Position numbers and translations under genes: made by a program
Part shown: positions 8,201-11,882 of the stretch, piece after piece
How the letters are laid out: every line of letters begins with the position of its first letter
Numbering within the stretch: position 1 is the first letter of the stretch
Source of the DNA: Octopus sinensis
Lineage: Eukaryota
DNA length: 64,000 nt
Direction of reading: 5' to 3'
NCBI RefSeq assembly: GCF_006345805.1
Contig: NC_043025.1
Span: 8,804,001-8,868,000, forward strand
Notes under the pieces: generated by a model
The model's database searches: none
The model's input: only the letters and a program-made list of their open reading frames with translations
What the model was told of the DNA's origin: nothing

Positions 8201-11200
8201 TATTTGGATTAATTTCATAATAATCTCCACACCATTACCATTATTATCATTGTTCCTTCAAAGATACAAGACCTGTCATTTAAAGGTTAATGGAGTACAG
8301 CTGATTAAATCTATCCCCAGTATTTCACTGGTACTTTGATGATGTTAATATTGACCAAATCATTAAAATACTAGAGAGAGTATATAATATGTATATATTA
8401 ACTAACCTGGGATATCATCAATGCCACCACATCATAGCTTTGTCTGAAAGTTATAGAAAGAAGAAAGAAAAATATTAAAAAATACGAAAATCATAGAAGT
8501 TGAGATAATTAATAATTATTAGGTCTTCAATTTATGAAAACAGATTTAATGAGCTACCTACAACCTGTTTACATCAATAATTATATAGACACACATAAAT
8601 ATAATCGATATATACACTCTAACCAGTTGATTAATCATATATATATACATCTTAATAAACACCACAATGTTTTCTATGGTACAACGAACAACAAGTTGAC
8701 CTCAGCAGGATTTGAACTCAGGATACAAAGGGTCGTAAATAAATAACACAAGGTATTGTATCCAGCAGTAACCAGAAACAGGAAGAGGTTAGAATCCTTG
8801 AATATTACTGTTTGATATTAAATGAACCCCTAGATATCACTGGTATAGATTATATCGACCTCAGAGTGACAATAGATACTCTGGAATTATTTCAGCTTGG
8901 AACATAAACAGTAAATCCTTGTAGGGGATGATTCTGTATTTAACCCTGGGTCAGAGGAAAGAGGGACATTACAAGAGGGAAGAGAGAGAAGAGAGAGAGA
9001 GAGAGAGGAAGAGAGAGAAAAAGAGAGGGGGAGGGAGGGAGAGGGAGAAGTATGGTGTTTTATGTGGAGTAAAAGTAAGAGAGAGGATTTGAACATGTGA
9101 TGTTGTGGTAATGGAGAATGAGATGAAGTGAAAGATCTAGTCAGGGACAACAACAACAACAATAACAACAAGAACAACAATAACAATAATTATGGCGGTG
9201 ATTACTGAATAAAGTAGATGGTAGTGTCATTACAGTAAGAGAGAGAAGAAGAAGAAGGATGACTCATGATGCTGACTCACCTTAGAACTGCCTGATGGAG
9301 TAGTGTGTTACCAGATTTATCTCTTTTATAGTAATCAATGCTCGGATGCTGCAGTAAGAGATTAACTGTATCCGCGTGTCCCTTGCCCCAGGCCTGGTGG
9401 AGTGGTGTGTCCCCATTGATAGCCTCAGTGTTTACATCAATAGCAGAGTGCTTCAGTAAATGCTTAACTGTATCTGTGTGTCCCTTGACACAGGCCCGGT
9501 GTAGTGGTGTGCACTGATCGCTATCCTTAGCATTTACCTCAATATCAGAGTGCTGCAGTAAAAGATTAACTGTTTCTGTGTGTCCATACCAACAGGCCCG
9601 GTGAAGGGGTGTGTACTGATCGCTATTCTTAGCATTTACATCAATATCAGAGTGCTTCAGTAGATGTTTAACTGTCTCCGTGTGTCCCTCGACACAGGCC
9701 ACGTATAGTGGTGTGCACTGATTGCTATCCTTAGCATTTACATCAATATCAGAGTGCTGCAGTAGATGTTTAACTGACTCCGTGTGTCCCTCGACACAGG
9801 CCATGTATAGTGGTGTGTACCGATCACTATCCTTAGCATTTACATCAATATCAGAGTGCTGCAGTAGATGTTTAACTGTCTCCGTGTGTCCCTCGACACA
9901 GGCCCGGTGTAGTGGTGTGCACTGATTGCTATCCTTAGCATTTACATCAATATCAGAGTGCTGCAGTAAAAGATTAACTGTTTCTGTGTGTCCATACCAA
10001 CAGGCACGGTGAAGGGGTGTGTACTGATCGCTATTCTTAGCATTTACATCAATATCAGAGTGCTTCAGTAGATGCTTAACTGTCTCCGTGAGTCCCGTGA
10101 CACAGGCCATGTATAGTGGTGTGTACTGATCGCTATCCTTAGCATTTACATCAATATCAGAGTGCTTCAGTAGATGCTTAACTGTCTCCGTGAGCCCCGT
10201 GACACAGGCCCGGTGTAGGGGTGTGCACAGATCGCTATTCTTAGCATTTACATCAATATCAGAGTGCTGCAGTAGATGTTTAACTGTCTCCGTGTGTCCC
10301 TTGACACAGGCCCGGTGTAGTGGTGTGCACTGATCGCTATCCATAGCATTTACATCAATATCAGAGTGCTGCAGTAGATGTTTAACTGTCTCCGTGTGTC
10401 CCTTGACACAGGCCCGGTGTAGTGGTGTGCACTGATCGCTATCCATAGCATTTACATCAATATCAGAGTGCTGCAGTAGATGTTTAACTGTCTCCGTGTG
10501 TCCCTCGACACAGGCCCGGTGTAGTGGTGTGCACTGATTGTTATCCTTAGCATTTACATCAATATCAGAGTGCTGCAGTAGATGTTTAACTGTCTCCGCG
10601 TGTCCCTCGACACAGGCCATGTATAGTGGTGTGTACCGATCGCTATCCTTAGCATTTACATCAATATCAGAGTGCTGCAGTAGATGTTTAACTGTCTCCG
10701 TGTGTCCCTCGACACAGGCCCGGTGTAGTGGTGTGCACTGATTGCTATCCTTAGCATTTACATCAATATCAGAGTGCTGCAGTAGATGTTTAACTGTCTC
10801 CGTGTGTCCCTCGACACAGGCCATGTATAGTGGTGTGTACCGATCGCTATTCTTAGCATTTACATCAATATCAGAGTGCTGCAGTAGATGTTTAACTGTC
10901 TCCGTGTGTCCCTCGACACAGGCCCGGTGTAGTGGTGTGCACTGATTGCTATCCTTAGCATTTACATCAATATCAGAGTGCTGCAGTAGATGTTTAACTG
11001 TCTCCGTGTGTCCCGTGACACAGGCCACGTATAGTGGTGATACTGATCGCTATCCTTAGCATTTACATCAATATCAGAGTGCTGCAGTAGATGTTTAACT
11101 TTCTCCGTGTCTCCCGTGACACAGGCCCTGTGTAGTGGTGTGTACTGATCTCTATCCTTAGCATTTACATCAATATCAGAGTGCTGCAGTAGATGTTTAA

Positions 11201-11882
11201 TTGTCTCCGTGTCTCCCGTGACACAGACCCGGTATAGTGGTGTGTACTGATTGCTATCCTTAGCATTTACCTCAATATCAGAGTGCTGCAGTAGATGTTT
11301 AACTGTCTCCGTGTGTCCCGTGACACAGGCCCGGTGTAGTGGTGTACACTGATTACTATCCTTAGCATTTACATCAATATCAGAGTGCTGCAGTAGATGC
11401 TTAACTGTCTCTGTGTGTCCGGTGACACAGGCCCGGTGTAGTGGTGTGTACTGATTGCTATCCTTAGCATTTACATCAATATCAGAGTGCTGCAGTAGAT
11501 GTTTAACTGTCTCCGTGTGTCCCTCGACACAGTTCCGGTGTAGTGGTGTGCACTGATCGCTATCCTTAGCATTTACCTCAATATCAGAGTGCTGCAGTAG
11601 ATGCTTAACTGTCTCCGTGTGTCCCTCGACACAGGCCCTGTGTAGTGGTGTGCACTGATTGCTATCCTTAGCATTTACATCAATAGCAGAGTGCTTCAGT
11701 AGATGTTTAACTGTCTCTGCGTGTCCCTTGTCACATGCCCGGTGTAGGGGTGTGTACTGATCTTTATTCAGAGCATTTACATCAATGCCAGACTGCAGCA
11801 ACAGATGTTCAGCAATTTCTGTTTGTCCGAGAGCACAGGCCAGATGTAGTAGTGTGTCACCATCTCTATTTTGTTGATTTAT
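2107..11882 (-). CDS. Spliced ankyrin-array / RING (Mind bomb-like C-terminus) putative E3 ubiquitin ligase; frameshifted as assembled
   Basis: Five GT-AG exons chain in phase: 11882-9281 (0 to 2 after repairing a 1-nt loss), 8443-8407 (2 to 0), 4739-4530 (0 to 0), 3150-2972 (0 to 2), 2249-2107 (2 to 1). Spliced product reads ...GNTLLHQAVLR|QSYDVVALMISQ|DSVKLNITNWDDMTPFLQAV...LDK|YYKK...LAVACYLADNGANFYHRNVWNVMPLDL...|CLLC...CEH...CKDC...CPKC. The ACYLAxNGA..PLDL segment followed by a RING matches the ANK-RING junction of MIB proteins as recalled. Confidence 0.85.
2972..3150 (-). CDS. MIB-like pre-RING exon (YYKKLQLSKEGKLSSLAVACYLADNGANFYHRNVWNVMPLDLINDTNLKERIKALFPPP)
   Basis: Hand-translated, not in the ORF track. 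Acceptor tttcatcatttgtag|TAC and donor CATT|gtaagt; 179 nt, phase 0 to 2, stop-free. Confidence 0.85.
4530..4739 (-). CDS. Ankyrin exon (70 aa, DSVKLNITNWDDMTPFLQAV...GNNCLHLAVRK...LDK)
   Basis: Inside ORF 4491..4784, with TPFL and NCLHLA ankyrin motifs. Donor AAG|gtaagt; acceptor ...cttcgacaaag|GAT is weaker. Confidence 0.85.
5940..6145 (-). mobile_element. RTE-clade LINE 3' fragment
   Basis: Minus strand encodes VQERRLHWYGHVR..., homologous to 14330-14500. Confidence 0.65.
6150..7545 (+). mobile_element. Decayed RLE-type (R4/NeSL-like) non-LTR retrotransposon, RT tail plus zinc knuckle plus endonuclease
   Basis: CYRYLGVDE (end of RT), CRLCGVHTEDITHIISSC (CCHC), RYD, EYWWNVPV, VVEISCPADVN and IQSITGTIKVCKSF, spread over frames with stops. 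Confidence 0.75.
8407..8443 (-). CDS. 37-nt exon completing an ankyrin repeat (R|QSYDVVALMISQ)
   Basis: Long pyrimidine tract ...ttctttctataactttcag|A and donor CCAG|gttagt. It is the element found that bridges phase 2 to phase 0, and it restores ankyrin spacing. Confidence 0.8.
9281..11882 (-). CDS. Giant ankyrin-array exon: about 25 tandem 34-aa (102-bp) ankyrin units plus a partial 26th
   Basis: Acceptor gttatttcttttcag|ATA at 11882 and donor CTAAG|gtgagt at 9281. ORFs 10962..11951 and 9277..11028 carry the consensus VNAKDSNQCTPLHRACVEGHTETVKHLLQHSDID. Exon length 2602 nt is one base short of the phase required. Confidence 0.92.

Follow-up and report, generated by a model that had tools for sequence, protein, structure and literature searches.

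What does a long array of near-identical ankyrin repeats do in a single exon of an octopus gene, and why does it vary on one face of the fold? The array lies in a 64,000-nucleotide (nt) stretch of Octopus sinensis DNA (NC_043025.1, positions 8,804,001 to 8,868,000 of the forward strand), the whole of which we call the window. A first-pass annotation of these letters had described repeat units at 9281-11882 that vary on the binding face of designed ankyrin repeat proteins (DARPins), and had read them as a natural combinatorial binder under diversifying selection. The array itself is borne out. On the minus strand the interval is exactly one 2602-nt exon (9281..11882) with canonical splice sites (acceptor ttttcAG|ATA at 11884-11883/11882, donor CTAAG|gtgagt at 9281/9280), and it holds 25 full ankyrin units and part of a 26th. 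We think it probable, and well short of certain, that this is the large ankyrin exon of an octopus ankyrin-RING-Death gene, encoding a long solenoid in which the scaffold is constant and the groove has been diversified as a target-recognition surface.

The repeat structure is regular. Cutting the exon in register gives 25 units of 34 codons (102 nt) at 9307..11855 on the minus strand, from unit 1 (11855-11754) to unit 25 (9408-9307), followed by the first 26 nt of a 26th unit, which correspond to its first helix. Tandem Repeats Finder reports the array at 9347-11809, with a period of 102, 24.2 copies, 90% matches and 0% indels. Units 2-23 form a homogeneous core (mean identity 90.7% in nucleotides and 82.7% in amino acids, over 748 residues), flanked by the divergent end units 1, 24 and 25. 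The two reading-frame pieces of the exon match the Pfam families Ank (PF00023, 210-433 bits) and Ank_2 (PF12796, 205-525 bits) with E=1e-64 to 1e-161, exceeding the curated ankyrin cut-off, and the junction repeat 26, at 23.1 bits, also passes its cut-off of 21.1. AlphaFold2, run on the single sequence of units 9-25, predicts a regular solenoid of 17 helix pairs (predicted local distance difference test (pLDDT) 90.5, predicted template modelling score (pTM) 0.72), and the best Foldseek matches to it are the 24-repeat domains of ankyrin-1 and AnkB (E=1e-30 to 1e-32), with an extended DARPin (6mol, 42% identity) also among the top matches. Matches to latrotoxin were set aside as reflecting the common ankyrin fold only. 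We number positions by the DARPin scheme, in which the T of TPLH is 6, and mark hairpin positions with primes. In the predicted layout helix 1 runs from P7 to E14 and helix 2 from T17 to Q25, with a 16-residue loop and hairpin between units; each unit has 34 residues, one more than the 33 of a DARPin repeat, and the extra residue lies in the loop after helix 2.

Variation among the units is placed very unevenly. The substitution pattern given by the first-pass annotation is matched residue by residue in a per-codon table of core units 2-23: K/M, D/N, S/N/R, N/D, Q/R/L, C/Y, TPL, H/Y, R/M/V, AC, V/W(/D), E/T/K/Y, G and H/D/L, so that the variable positions are 34, 1-5, 9, 10, 13, 14 and 16. The outer helix and loop are nearly invariant, as had been claimed, with codons 26-33 (HSDIDVNA) fixed except for D28A (once) and D30E (three times). 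The AlphaFold2 model places the variable positions on the DARPin-type face, namely in the hairpin and loop before helix 1, in helix 1 itself (9, 10, 13, 14) and in the turn at 16, and maps the invariant stretch to helix 2 and the loop that follows it. DARPin libraries are reportedly randomised at positions 2, 3, 5, 13, 14 and 33, and we took the equivalents in the octopus unit (2´, 3´, 5´, 13, 14 and 34) as six a priori groove positions. Together they carry 5.39 of 14.21 bits of entropy (38%; exact permutation p=0.002) and 12 of the 33 minimum nonsynonymous events (p=0.017). It is also true that most inter-unit differences change an amino acid, with 33 of the minimum events nonsynonymous (69%) and 15 synonymous. 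This majority is no evidence by itself, because it does not exceed the 77% expected from random mutation of the unit.

The variation is specific to the groove and does not reflect a general freedom of the surface. A family baseline was taken from 120 other ankyrin proteins, with 614 repeats. There the outer helix and loop (positions 17-19, 21, 22 and 25-28) vary to about the same extent as groove positions 10, 13 and 14 (2.4-3.4 against 3.6-3.8 bits), and in the octopus array those same outer positions are almost frozen, at 0-0.7 bits. Nonsynonymous events per site are 2.6 times as frequent in groove as in convex codons (p=0.028), variants common to at least two units are enriched in the groove (p=0.005), and the 23 units in structural register display 17 distinct groove combinations. 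A frozen convex face, and the return of the pattern in a second species (see below), make the observation stronger than it had first been stated.

Beside the amino-acid pattern stands one at the nucleotide level. Codons 24 to 1´ (CTG CAG CAC TCT GAT ATT GAT GTA AAT GCT AAG GAT) form a 36-nt block in which none of the 15 synonymous events of the 22 core units falls (p=0.003). It includes the splice-site-like strings CTGCAG and GTAAAT, and could be either a homogenisation hot spot or a region of nucleotide-level constraint.

A bias towards groove codons could in principle be mutational, if CpG or other hotspots, or multi-nucleotide events, happened to strike them. Consensus CpGs do occur at codon 10 (CGG), at the 13|14 junction (GTC|GAG), in codon 17 (ACG) and at the 2´|3´ junction (AGC|GAT); E14K, D3´N and the synonymous changes at T17 and S2´ are CpG transitions, and differences of two or three bases between the states of codons 10, 13 and 14 inflate the maximum-likelihood (ML) estimate of the dN/dS ratio (ω) at 14 and 10. 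Yet CpG hotspots, named by the first-pass annotation as what could undo its reading, explain only about 5 of the 39 variable columns; three are flagged as CpG transitions, and two tri-allelic columns, picked out by inspecting the table, bring the count to about five. The main polymorphisms (H9Y, C5´Y, D1´N, K34M, R10M/V, V13W and H16D/L) are not CpG transitions, and the same groove positions vary with other residues in Octopus vulgaris. We consider a mutational artefact very improbable.

Is the groove then diversified by selection, or merely left alone? Pooled Nei-Gojobori pN/pS is 0.87 overall. Splitting off the DARPin positions gives 1.26 for these and 0.66 for the rest; splitting by the position list of the first-pass annotation, which was picked after seeing the data, gives 1.34 and 0.39. 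When events are counted by parsimony on a neighbour-joining tree, the six DARPin positions receive 26 of the 59 nonsynonymous ones (p=1e-5), and ω is 1.1 (1.13) with local synonymous counts. A GY94 partition model gives a groove ω of 3.0-3.3 against 0.8-1.0 elsewhere under three codon-frequency models, and this signal comes almost entirely from positions 14 and 10. We do not trust the tree-based value of about 3 as a test of ω > 1, because the units recombine and because codons 10, 13 and 14 differ by multi-nucleotide steps, their states lying two to three bases apart.

Recombination among units is pervasive. All four gametes are seen in 98 of 351 informative site pairs (28%), and the states of position 14 run in blocks along the array while those of H9 and R10 alternate. 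Four sets of units, {10,12,20}, {11,13,21}, {14,15} and {19,23}, are near-identical at 1-3 bases apart; the dimer 10-11 recurs nearly unchanged as 12-13 and 20-21, and 18-19 is similar to 22-23. A recombination-robust count, which uses the minimum spanning set of codon states at each site and no tree, gives an ω of 1.20 at the DARPin positions, with P(ω>1)=0.39, against 0.51 elsewhere. Scaled to the synonymous rate of codons outside the invariant block, the groove value is 0.82, and for unit-private mutations ω is 0.8-0.9. Within this array, scaffold and convex face are constrained and the groove changes at a roughly neutral rate, and positive selection is unproven from the array alone.

The orthologous locus of O. 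vulgaris (GCA_951406725.2, locus L002) extends the question over time. It is collinear with the window at 92-96% identity, and its giant exon, of 3011 nt, has 29 full units with a mutual identity of 84% (83.9% in nucleotides) and no stop in the ankyrin frame over 1003 codons. The two species have identical splice sites and do not differ in the 27 nt that open the exon or in the 26 nt that close it. Between these ends the repertoires differ: units with TPLYMAC are absent in O. vulgaris, units with TPLHQACAEGH...VNKKGH are absent in the window, and only the end units pair (u1/v1, u24/v28 and u25/v29, with 8, 7 and 3 differences). The same groove positions nevertheless vary in O. vulgaris, with different residues. 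There, 32 of 87 minimum nonsynonymous events fall in the six DARPin positions (p=1e-4), and ω is 1.92 at these positions (p=0.01) against 0.79 elsewhere and 0.79 in the convex set.

The three pairs of orthologous end units allow a comparison with a neutral rate. Of the 18 changes that separate them, 16 are nonsynonymous and 2 synonymous (dN 0.068, dS 0.029), and in the flanking introns 182 of 5743 aligned bases are mismatched (0.032). Relative to this intron rate, nonsynonymous change runs at 2.1 times over all sites (p=0.0045), at 4.2 times over the 11 positions listed by the first-pass annotation (p=1e-4) and at 4.8 times over the DARPin six (p=8e-4). At the other codons it is 1.0 times, and at synonymous sites the rate is 0.9 times that of the introns, neither being a significant departure. 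The 21 core scaffold codons of the end units show 0 changes where about 4.6 would be expected by a hand calculation from the same rates. Downstream of the array the exons have an ω of about 0.6 between species, and the RING exon is identical in protein. Taken as they stand, the between-species sequences point to faster-than-neutral change in the groove under continued constraint on the scaffold.

A competing account needs no diversifying selection: purifying selection on the fold and on some function of the convex face would leave the groove free to drift, as in an ordinary ankyrin domain, and the acceleration between species would be conversion shuffling variants that already existed. Several of our results count against selection and in favour of such drift. 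The robust groove ω of 1.2, the scaled value of 0.82 and the parsimony value of 1.13 are close to neutral, and private variants show no groove enrichment (3 of 14). The ω of the O. vulgaris array is somewhat inflated because in this more diverged array the synonymous minimum-event count saturates before the nonsynonymous one. The between-species test has three units and 18 differences to work with, many of which involve the common state of the array, and gene conversion from other units could be the route by which groove variants were imported, in keeping with the frequent four-gamete failures. A raised 'horizontal' dN/dS is, moreover, general in young repeats (PMC5120217). Drift alone, in contrast, would yield groove change at no more than the intron rate, and we find 4-5 times that rate. 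The end-unit differences are scattered single bases that alternate in direction, so that a single conversion tract is no explanation. Drift would also leave the ω of 1.9 within the O. vulgaris array (p=0.01) to be accounted for, and gives no explanation of why a convex face that is free to vary in the family is frozen here. We regard ordinary drift as possible but on balance doubtful, and selection, rather than conversion, as what probably drives the acceleration of the groove. Of the claim of diversifying selection, then, the part that stands is a groove dN/dS above that of the rest of the unit, to which the comparison with O. vulgaris lends support; an ω significantly above 1 in this array is not obtained by the robust count. 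Diversifying selection is overall a plausible interpretation and is not proven.

Which protein would carry such a surface? All the exons that we assign to the gene lie on the minus strand. The coding part of exon 1 (12432..12457) reads ATG AAG CAT GTC AGA GTT GAT GGA AT|gtgagt, encoding MKHVRVDG and ending in phase 2. It is identical in O. vulgaris, matches the N-terminus of the O. vulgaris protein P0141 (CAJ1099198.1) and is the start of the annotated short isoform. After the giant exon comes a 37-nt microexon (8407..8443; A CAA AGC TAT GAT GTG GTG GCA TTG ATG ATA TCC CAG) with a strong acceptor and a GT donor, which ranked top of 1319 acceptor/length combinations when every AG in the intron was scanned against a family ankyrin hidden Markov model (HMM). 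It encodes the second helix of repeat 26, keeps the frame into the next exon whether it follows the giant exon or exon 1, and is confirmed by CAJ1099198.1 (MKHVRVDGIQSYDVVALMLSQDSVKL...); P0141 goes beyond P0121 only at the N-terminus, where it has exon 1 and the remainder of the microexon. Because helix 1 of its repeat sits in the giant exon, the microexon makes structural sense only in the long form. The annotated short isoform keeps the microexon though the first helix of that repeat is absent there.

Two other solutions for this junction were rejected. A candidate microexon at 8255-8204 fitted both phases and had a Pfam Ank match; it has an AT instead of a GT donor and a 5-residue insertion, and gave way to the 37-nt exon of the systematic scan. 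An AlphaFold2 model of the rejected junction was uninformative (pLDDT 57). Splicing the giant exon straight to the one at 4739 breaks the frame (AG+G ATT CGG TGA), a problem that the microexon resolves.

Further downstream, an exon at 4530..4739 encodes ankyrin repeat 27 and the start of repeat 28 (DSVKLNITNWDDMTPFLQAV...LTVLDK) and is 100% identical to the corresponding part of XP_036370845.1 (P0122). It is followed by an exon with a degenerate last ankyrin repeat and a linker (2972..3150, YYKKLQLSKEGKLSSLAVACYLADNGANFYHRN...ALFPPP), and by a RING exon (2107..2249, CLLCKSSEATVTFQPCEHTVTCKDCCSENEPKNCPKCQQVIVDKRGF) that matches zf-C3HC4_3 (PF13920) with 30-36 bits against a cut-off of 27. From the giant exon through the microexon and these next two exons to the RING exon the chain is in frame, with canonical splice sites throughout. 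The RING-exon donor leads to Death-domain exons beyond the start of the window; no Death domain was found within the window, and Pfam finds one (PF00531) in P0122. The exons downstream of the array would thus add two to three more ankyrin repeats, a RING of the C-terminal type and a Death domain. They are 100% identical to O. sinensis XP_036370845.1, annotated as 'E3 ubiquitin-protein ligase MIB2-like'. The name is loose: in Pfam, MIB/HERC2 and ZZ domains are absent from P0122, P0121 and P0124.

No further ankyrin exon besides 4739-4530 was found in the window by tblastn with 120 ankyrin proteins, and a search for an upstream ankyrin exon ending in phase 0 gave nothing above baseline. NACHT and NB-ARC domains were found neither in the annotated proteins nor in minus-strand frames 0 and 2 downstream of the array, with frame 1 unscanned and the upstream 52 kb checked only as open reading frames (ORFs) of at least 60 residues and by the search for exons ending in ankyrin sequence. 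A homolog search with the downstream exons returned a gene family of four clusters only, all from O. sinensis or O. vulgaris. Neighbouring gene calls (L002 31747-35819 in O. vulgaris and L001 23786-27213 in O. sinensis; opposite strand) are long ankyrin proteins of 597 and 604 residues, and the 597-residue O. vulgaris product also has a RING match. The same chromosome carries, at a distance of about 90 kb, a paralog, XP_036370842-44 (locus L003), which is without the 102-nt array. This arrangement points to a local cluster of the gene family.

Is the giant exon still translated? It is not an intact reading frame in either assembly. In the window, a 1-nt deletion with an adjacent substitution at 11040..11041 on the minus strand (cagta-tcacca against cagtacacacca, at the junction of units 8 and 9) shifts the ankyrin frame between these units, and the upstream frame stops at 10964-10962. 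In the O. vulgaris exon the indels are -1 in unit 11 (in AAGGG) and, seven units further on, +1 in unit 18, so that its length is on balance unchanged. Splicing exon 1 to the canonical acceptor reads ATA TAA, a stop, and an upstream search for another 5´ coding exon came up empty. The giant exon is missing from both O. vulgaris isoforms and from the O. sinensis model. With a 582-residue piece and the unique end units as queries, no protein among 5.8 billion was found to contain the array, the best matches being generic ankyrin sequences 38-47% identical to it. All of this speaks against a recognition surface in present use. Exact-sequence look-ups of the window ORF, P0121 and P0123 returned nothing on record, and in the literature on cephalopods we found nothing specific to this gene family.

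The sequence also offers a way round the 5´ stop. A second AG at 11867-11866, 17 nt further in, would move the start of the exon to 11865 and bring it into phase with exon 1 (MKHVRVDG-I-DGDTLLHLAC...), and with this start the length of the intact exon is divisible by 3 in both species (2586 nt here and 2994 nt in O. vulgaris). If this putative acceptor is used, inclusion and skipping would both keep the frame. The missing database entries have a partial explanation as well. The older O. sinensis assembly (GCA_006345805.1, CM016887.1) has a gap of 100 N at L001 7968-8067, where the match to the window ends (window 6639); this assembly therefore lacks both array and microexon, and its RefSeq model begins at an internal Met. 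An assembly gap at the array helps to explain why the array is absent from database proteins.

The exon might instead be a decaying relic, in a gene that makes only the short ankyrin-RING-Death protein and skips a degenerating exon whose groove variation is a legacy. The short form is intact in the window and the annotated isoforms skip the array, the frameshifting indels lie in different places in the two assemblies, and exon 1 spliced to the canonical acceptor runs into an immediate stop. The unit-private mutations, with ω of 0.8-0.9 and no positional bias, and an ML ω outside the groove of 0.8-1.0, are likewise what a relic might show. Decay fits less well with an ankyrin frame free of stops over 867 codons in the window, on both sides of the deletion, and over 1003 in O. 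vulgaris, given that 1.4-2.3 stops would be expected in the window alone if the inter-unit changes were neutral. By our estimate, the 3.2% neutral divergence would have given roughly 1-3 stops and several indels per lineage, and one or two indels are seen. Nor would a relic be expected to keep 21 scaffold codons free of change (against about 4.6 changes expected), or to keep both splice sites, the 27-nt head and the 26-nt tail of the exon identical between species, and the half-repeat in the microexon is completed only by the giant exon. The indels may themselves be errors of the consensus within a tandem repeat; the -1 of O. vulgaris lies in AAGGG. We see decay as a serious alternative that is nonetheless unlikely, and suggest that the exon is, or recently was, translated.

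Speaking for current translation are the conserved and perfect splice sites, the lack of stops, the small number of indels and a microexon that completes a repeat only in the long form; on the other side stand the frameshifts in both assemblies, the gene models that skip the exon and the want of a demonstrated productive 5´ junction. The first-pass idea of a natural binder is affected accordingly. Its structural half, the mapping of variation to the groove, has held up, and the idea as a whole is made uncertain by the frameshifts in both assemblies and by the absence of the exon from every annotated protein.

The reading that we favour, as the probable one, is as follows. The exon encodes an ankyrin solenoid of at least 26 repeats in which scaffold, outer helices and connecting loops are near-identical and the groove, made up of the hairpin tips and the exposed face of helix 1, differs from one unit to another. 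The array evolves by duplication and loss of units and by recombination or gene conversion among them, and has turned over between the two sister species. Amino-acid change in the groove that is faster than neutral, with fold-determining positions held, is the signature that would be expected of a diversifying target-recognition surface. Were the exon included in the mRNA, it would give a RING ligase its recognition arm, with signalling through the Death domain, and innate immunity or the control of cell death would be the most plausible setting.

Arrays of near-identical repeats that vary on the ligand-binding face provide recognition diversity without somatic rearrangement in fungal NOD-like receptors (NLRs), in PRDM9 and in the variable lymphocyte receptors (VLRs) of lampreys. 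The closest known parallel is the highly internally conserved ankyrin (ANK), tetratricopeptide (TPR) and WD (ANK/TPR/WD) domains of the fungal NLRs. In fungal NLRs, including the HET-E/NWD family of Podospora, near-identical repeats evolve in concert, and in the ankyrin domain the variable or positively selected positions lie on the concave face, in the inner helix and hairpin (Dyrka et al. 2014, PMC4986451). The octopus locus shares near-identical tandem units, a repeat number that differs between genomes, shuffling by recombination, variation on the concave face and the attachment to a cell-death or immune module; shuffling and change in repeat number are seen here in the four-gamete pairs (98 of 351), the duplicated dimers and the 25 against 29 units of the two species. 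It differs in being an animal gene in which NACHT or NB-ARC was not found and in having RING and Death domains as partners. High internal conservation, set at 85% identity or more among units across 100 residues or more, is found in only 0.8% of metazoan ANK/TPR/WD repeats (PMC4986451). Against that 85%, the core units of the octopus array stand at 82.7% in amino acids and 90.7% in nucleotides over 748 residues, and those of O. vulgaris at 83.9% in nucleotides.

A bolder version of this parallel would make the locus an animal counterpart of the fungal hypervariable-repeat immune receptors. The exon would be an includable ankyrin cassette, with units duplicated, lost and recombined and a groove under diversifying selection, feeding a RING ligase with a Death domain. 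Alleles would differ between individuals in repeat number, in the groove and in the integrity of the frame, as at other fast-evolving immune loci. We put this forward as speculation, and think it rather improbable in its full form.

Other repeat proteins resemble the array in part. DARPins share the repeated identical scaffold and diversity at the equivalents of positions 2, 3, 5, 13, 14 and 33. Unlike DARPins, in which they are fixed, positions 1, 4, 9, 10 and 16 also vary in the octopus array, which has only 2-4 states per position and so is no randomised library, and which has at least 26 repeats rather than 2-3 internal ones. The Mind bomb proteins MIB1 and MIB2 have an ankyrin domain followed by a C-terminal RING of the zf-C3HC4_3 type, and the ankyrin structure of MIB1 (8v0e) is among the Foldseek matches. 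The annotated octopus proteins, in contrast, lack MIB/HERC2 and ZZ domains, have one RING rather than two or three, and carry a Death domain after the RING that Mind bomb proteins do not have, and the array has at least 26 near-identical repeats rather than about nine divergent ones. The 24-repeat membrane-binding domains of ankyrin-R and ankyrin-B are the best structural matches and are likewise long superhelical solenoids with an inner groove that binds several targets, but their repeats are old, divergent and individually conserved between species, whereas those of the octopus are young and exchanged between units. The zinc-finger arrays of the PRDM9 type are also tandem arrays in a single exon whose units are near-identical except at contact residues and which turn over quickly between related species; they have another fold and another class of ligand, DNA contacts rather than a protein-binding groove. 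Elevated 'horizontal' dN/dS is reported for young repeat arrays including PRDM9, for which 2.7 is quoted (Persi et al. 2016, PMC5120217), against a pooled pN/pS of 0.87 in the octopus array.

Animals seldom have ankyrin arrays of this sort, and little is known of immunity in cephalopods. If the exon is expressed, it would be a candidate for a fast-diversifying intracellular sensor wired to ubiquitination and Death-domain signalling. Since the array coincides with a gap in the older O. sinensis assembly and current gene models skip it, loci of this kind are systematically missing from protein databases.

The window as a whole is AT-rich and rich in microsatellites and transposon debris. Pfam identifies a zf-RVT region (the zinc-binding region of reverse transcriptases) at 44345-44881 and a Mos1-type HTH_48 at 46607-46936, both on the minus strand. 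Three further pieces were recognised by eye only and have no Pfam match: a mariner-like fragment at 18334-18603 (minus strand) and reverse-transcriptase-like pieces at 19201-20157 (minus strand) and 13348-13563 (plus strand). An Rfam scan of the window returned no matches. Tandem arrays of a 184-185-nt unit resembling a short interspersed element (SINE) occur at 48349-49265 (5 copies) and 62027-62768 (4 copies) in opposite orientations; the unit has a tRNA-like GTTCAAATTCC stretch, with no Rfam match at gathering scores. Local duplications are found at 21832-22677 (428 nt in 2 copies, 98%), 40960-41620 (250 nt in 2.6 copies, 97%) and 57880-58265 (168 nt in 2.3 copies, 97%). Finally, a 57/169-nt tandem repeat at 95-563 has a counterpart in the same place in O. 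vulgaris (L002 21570-22546), which is longer, with 17 copies against 8.

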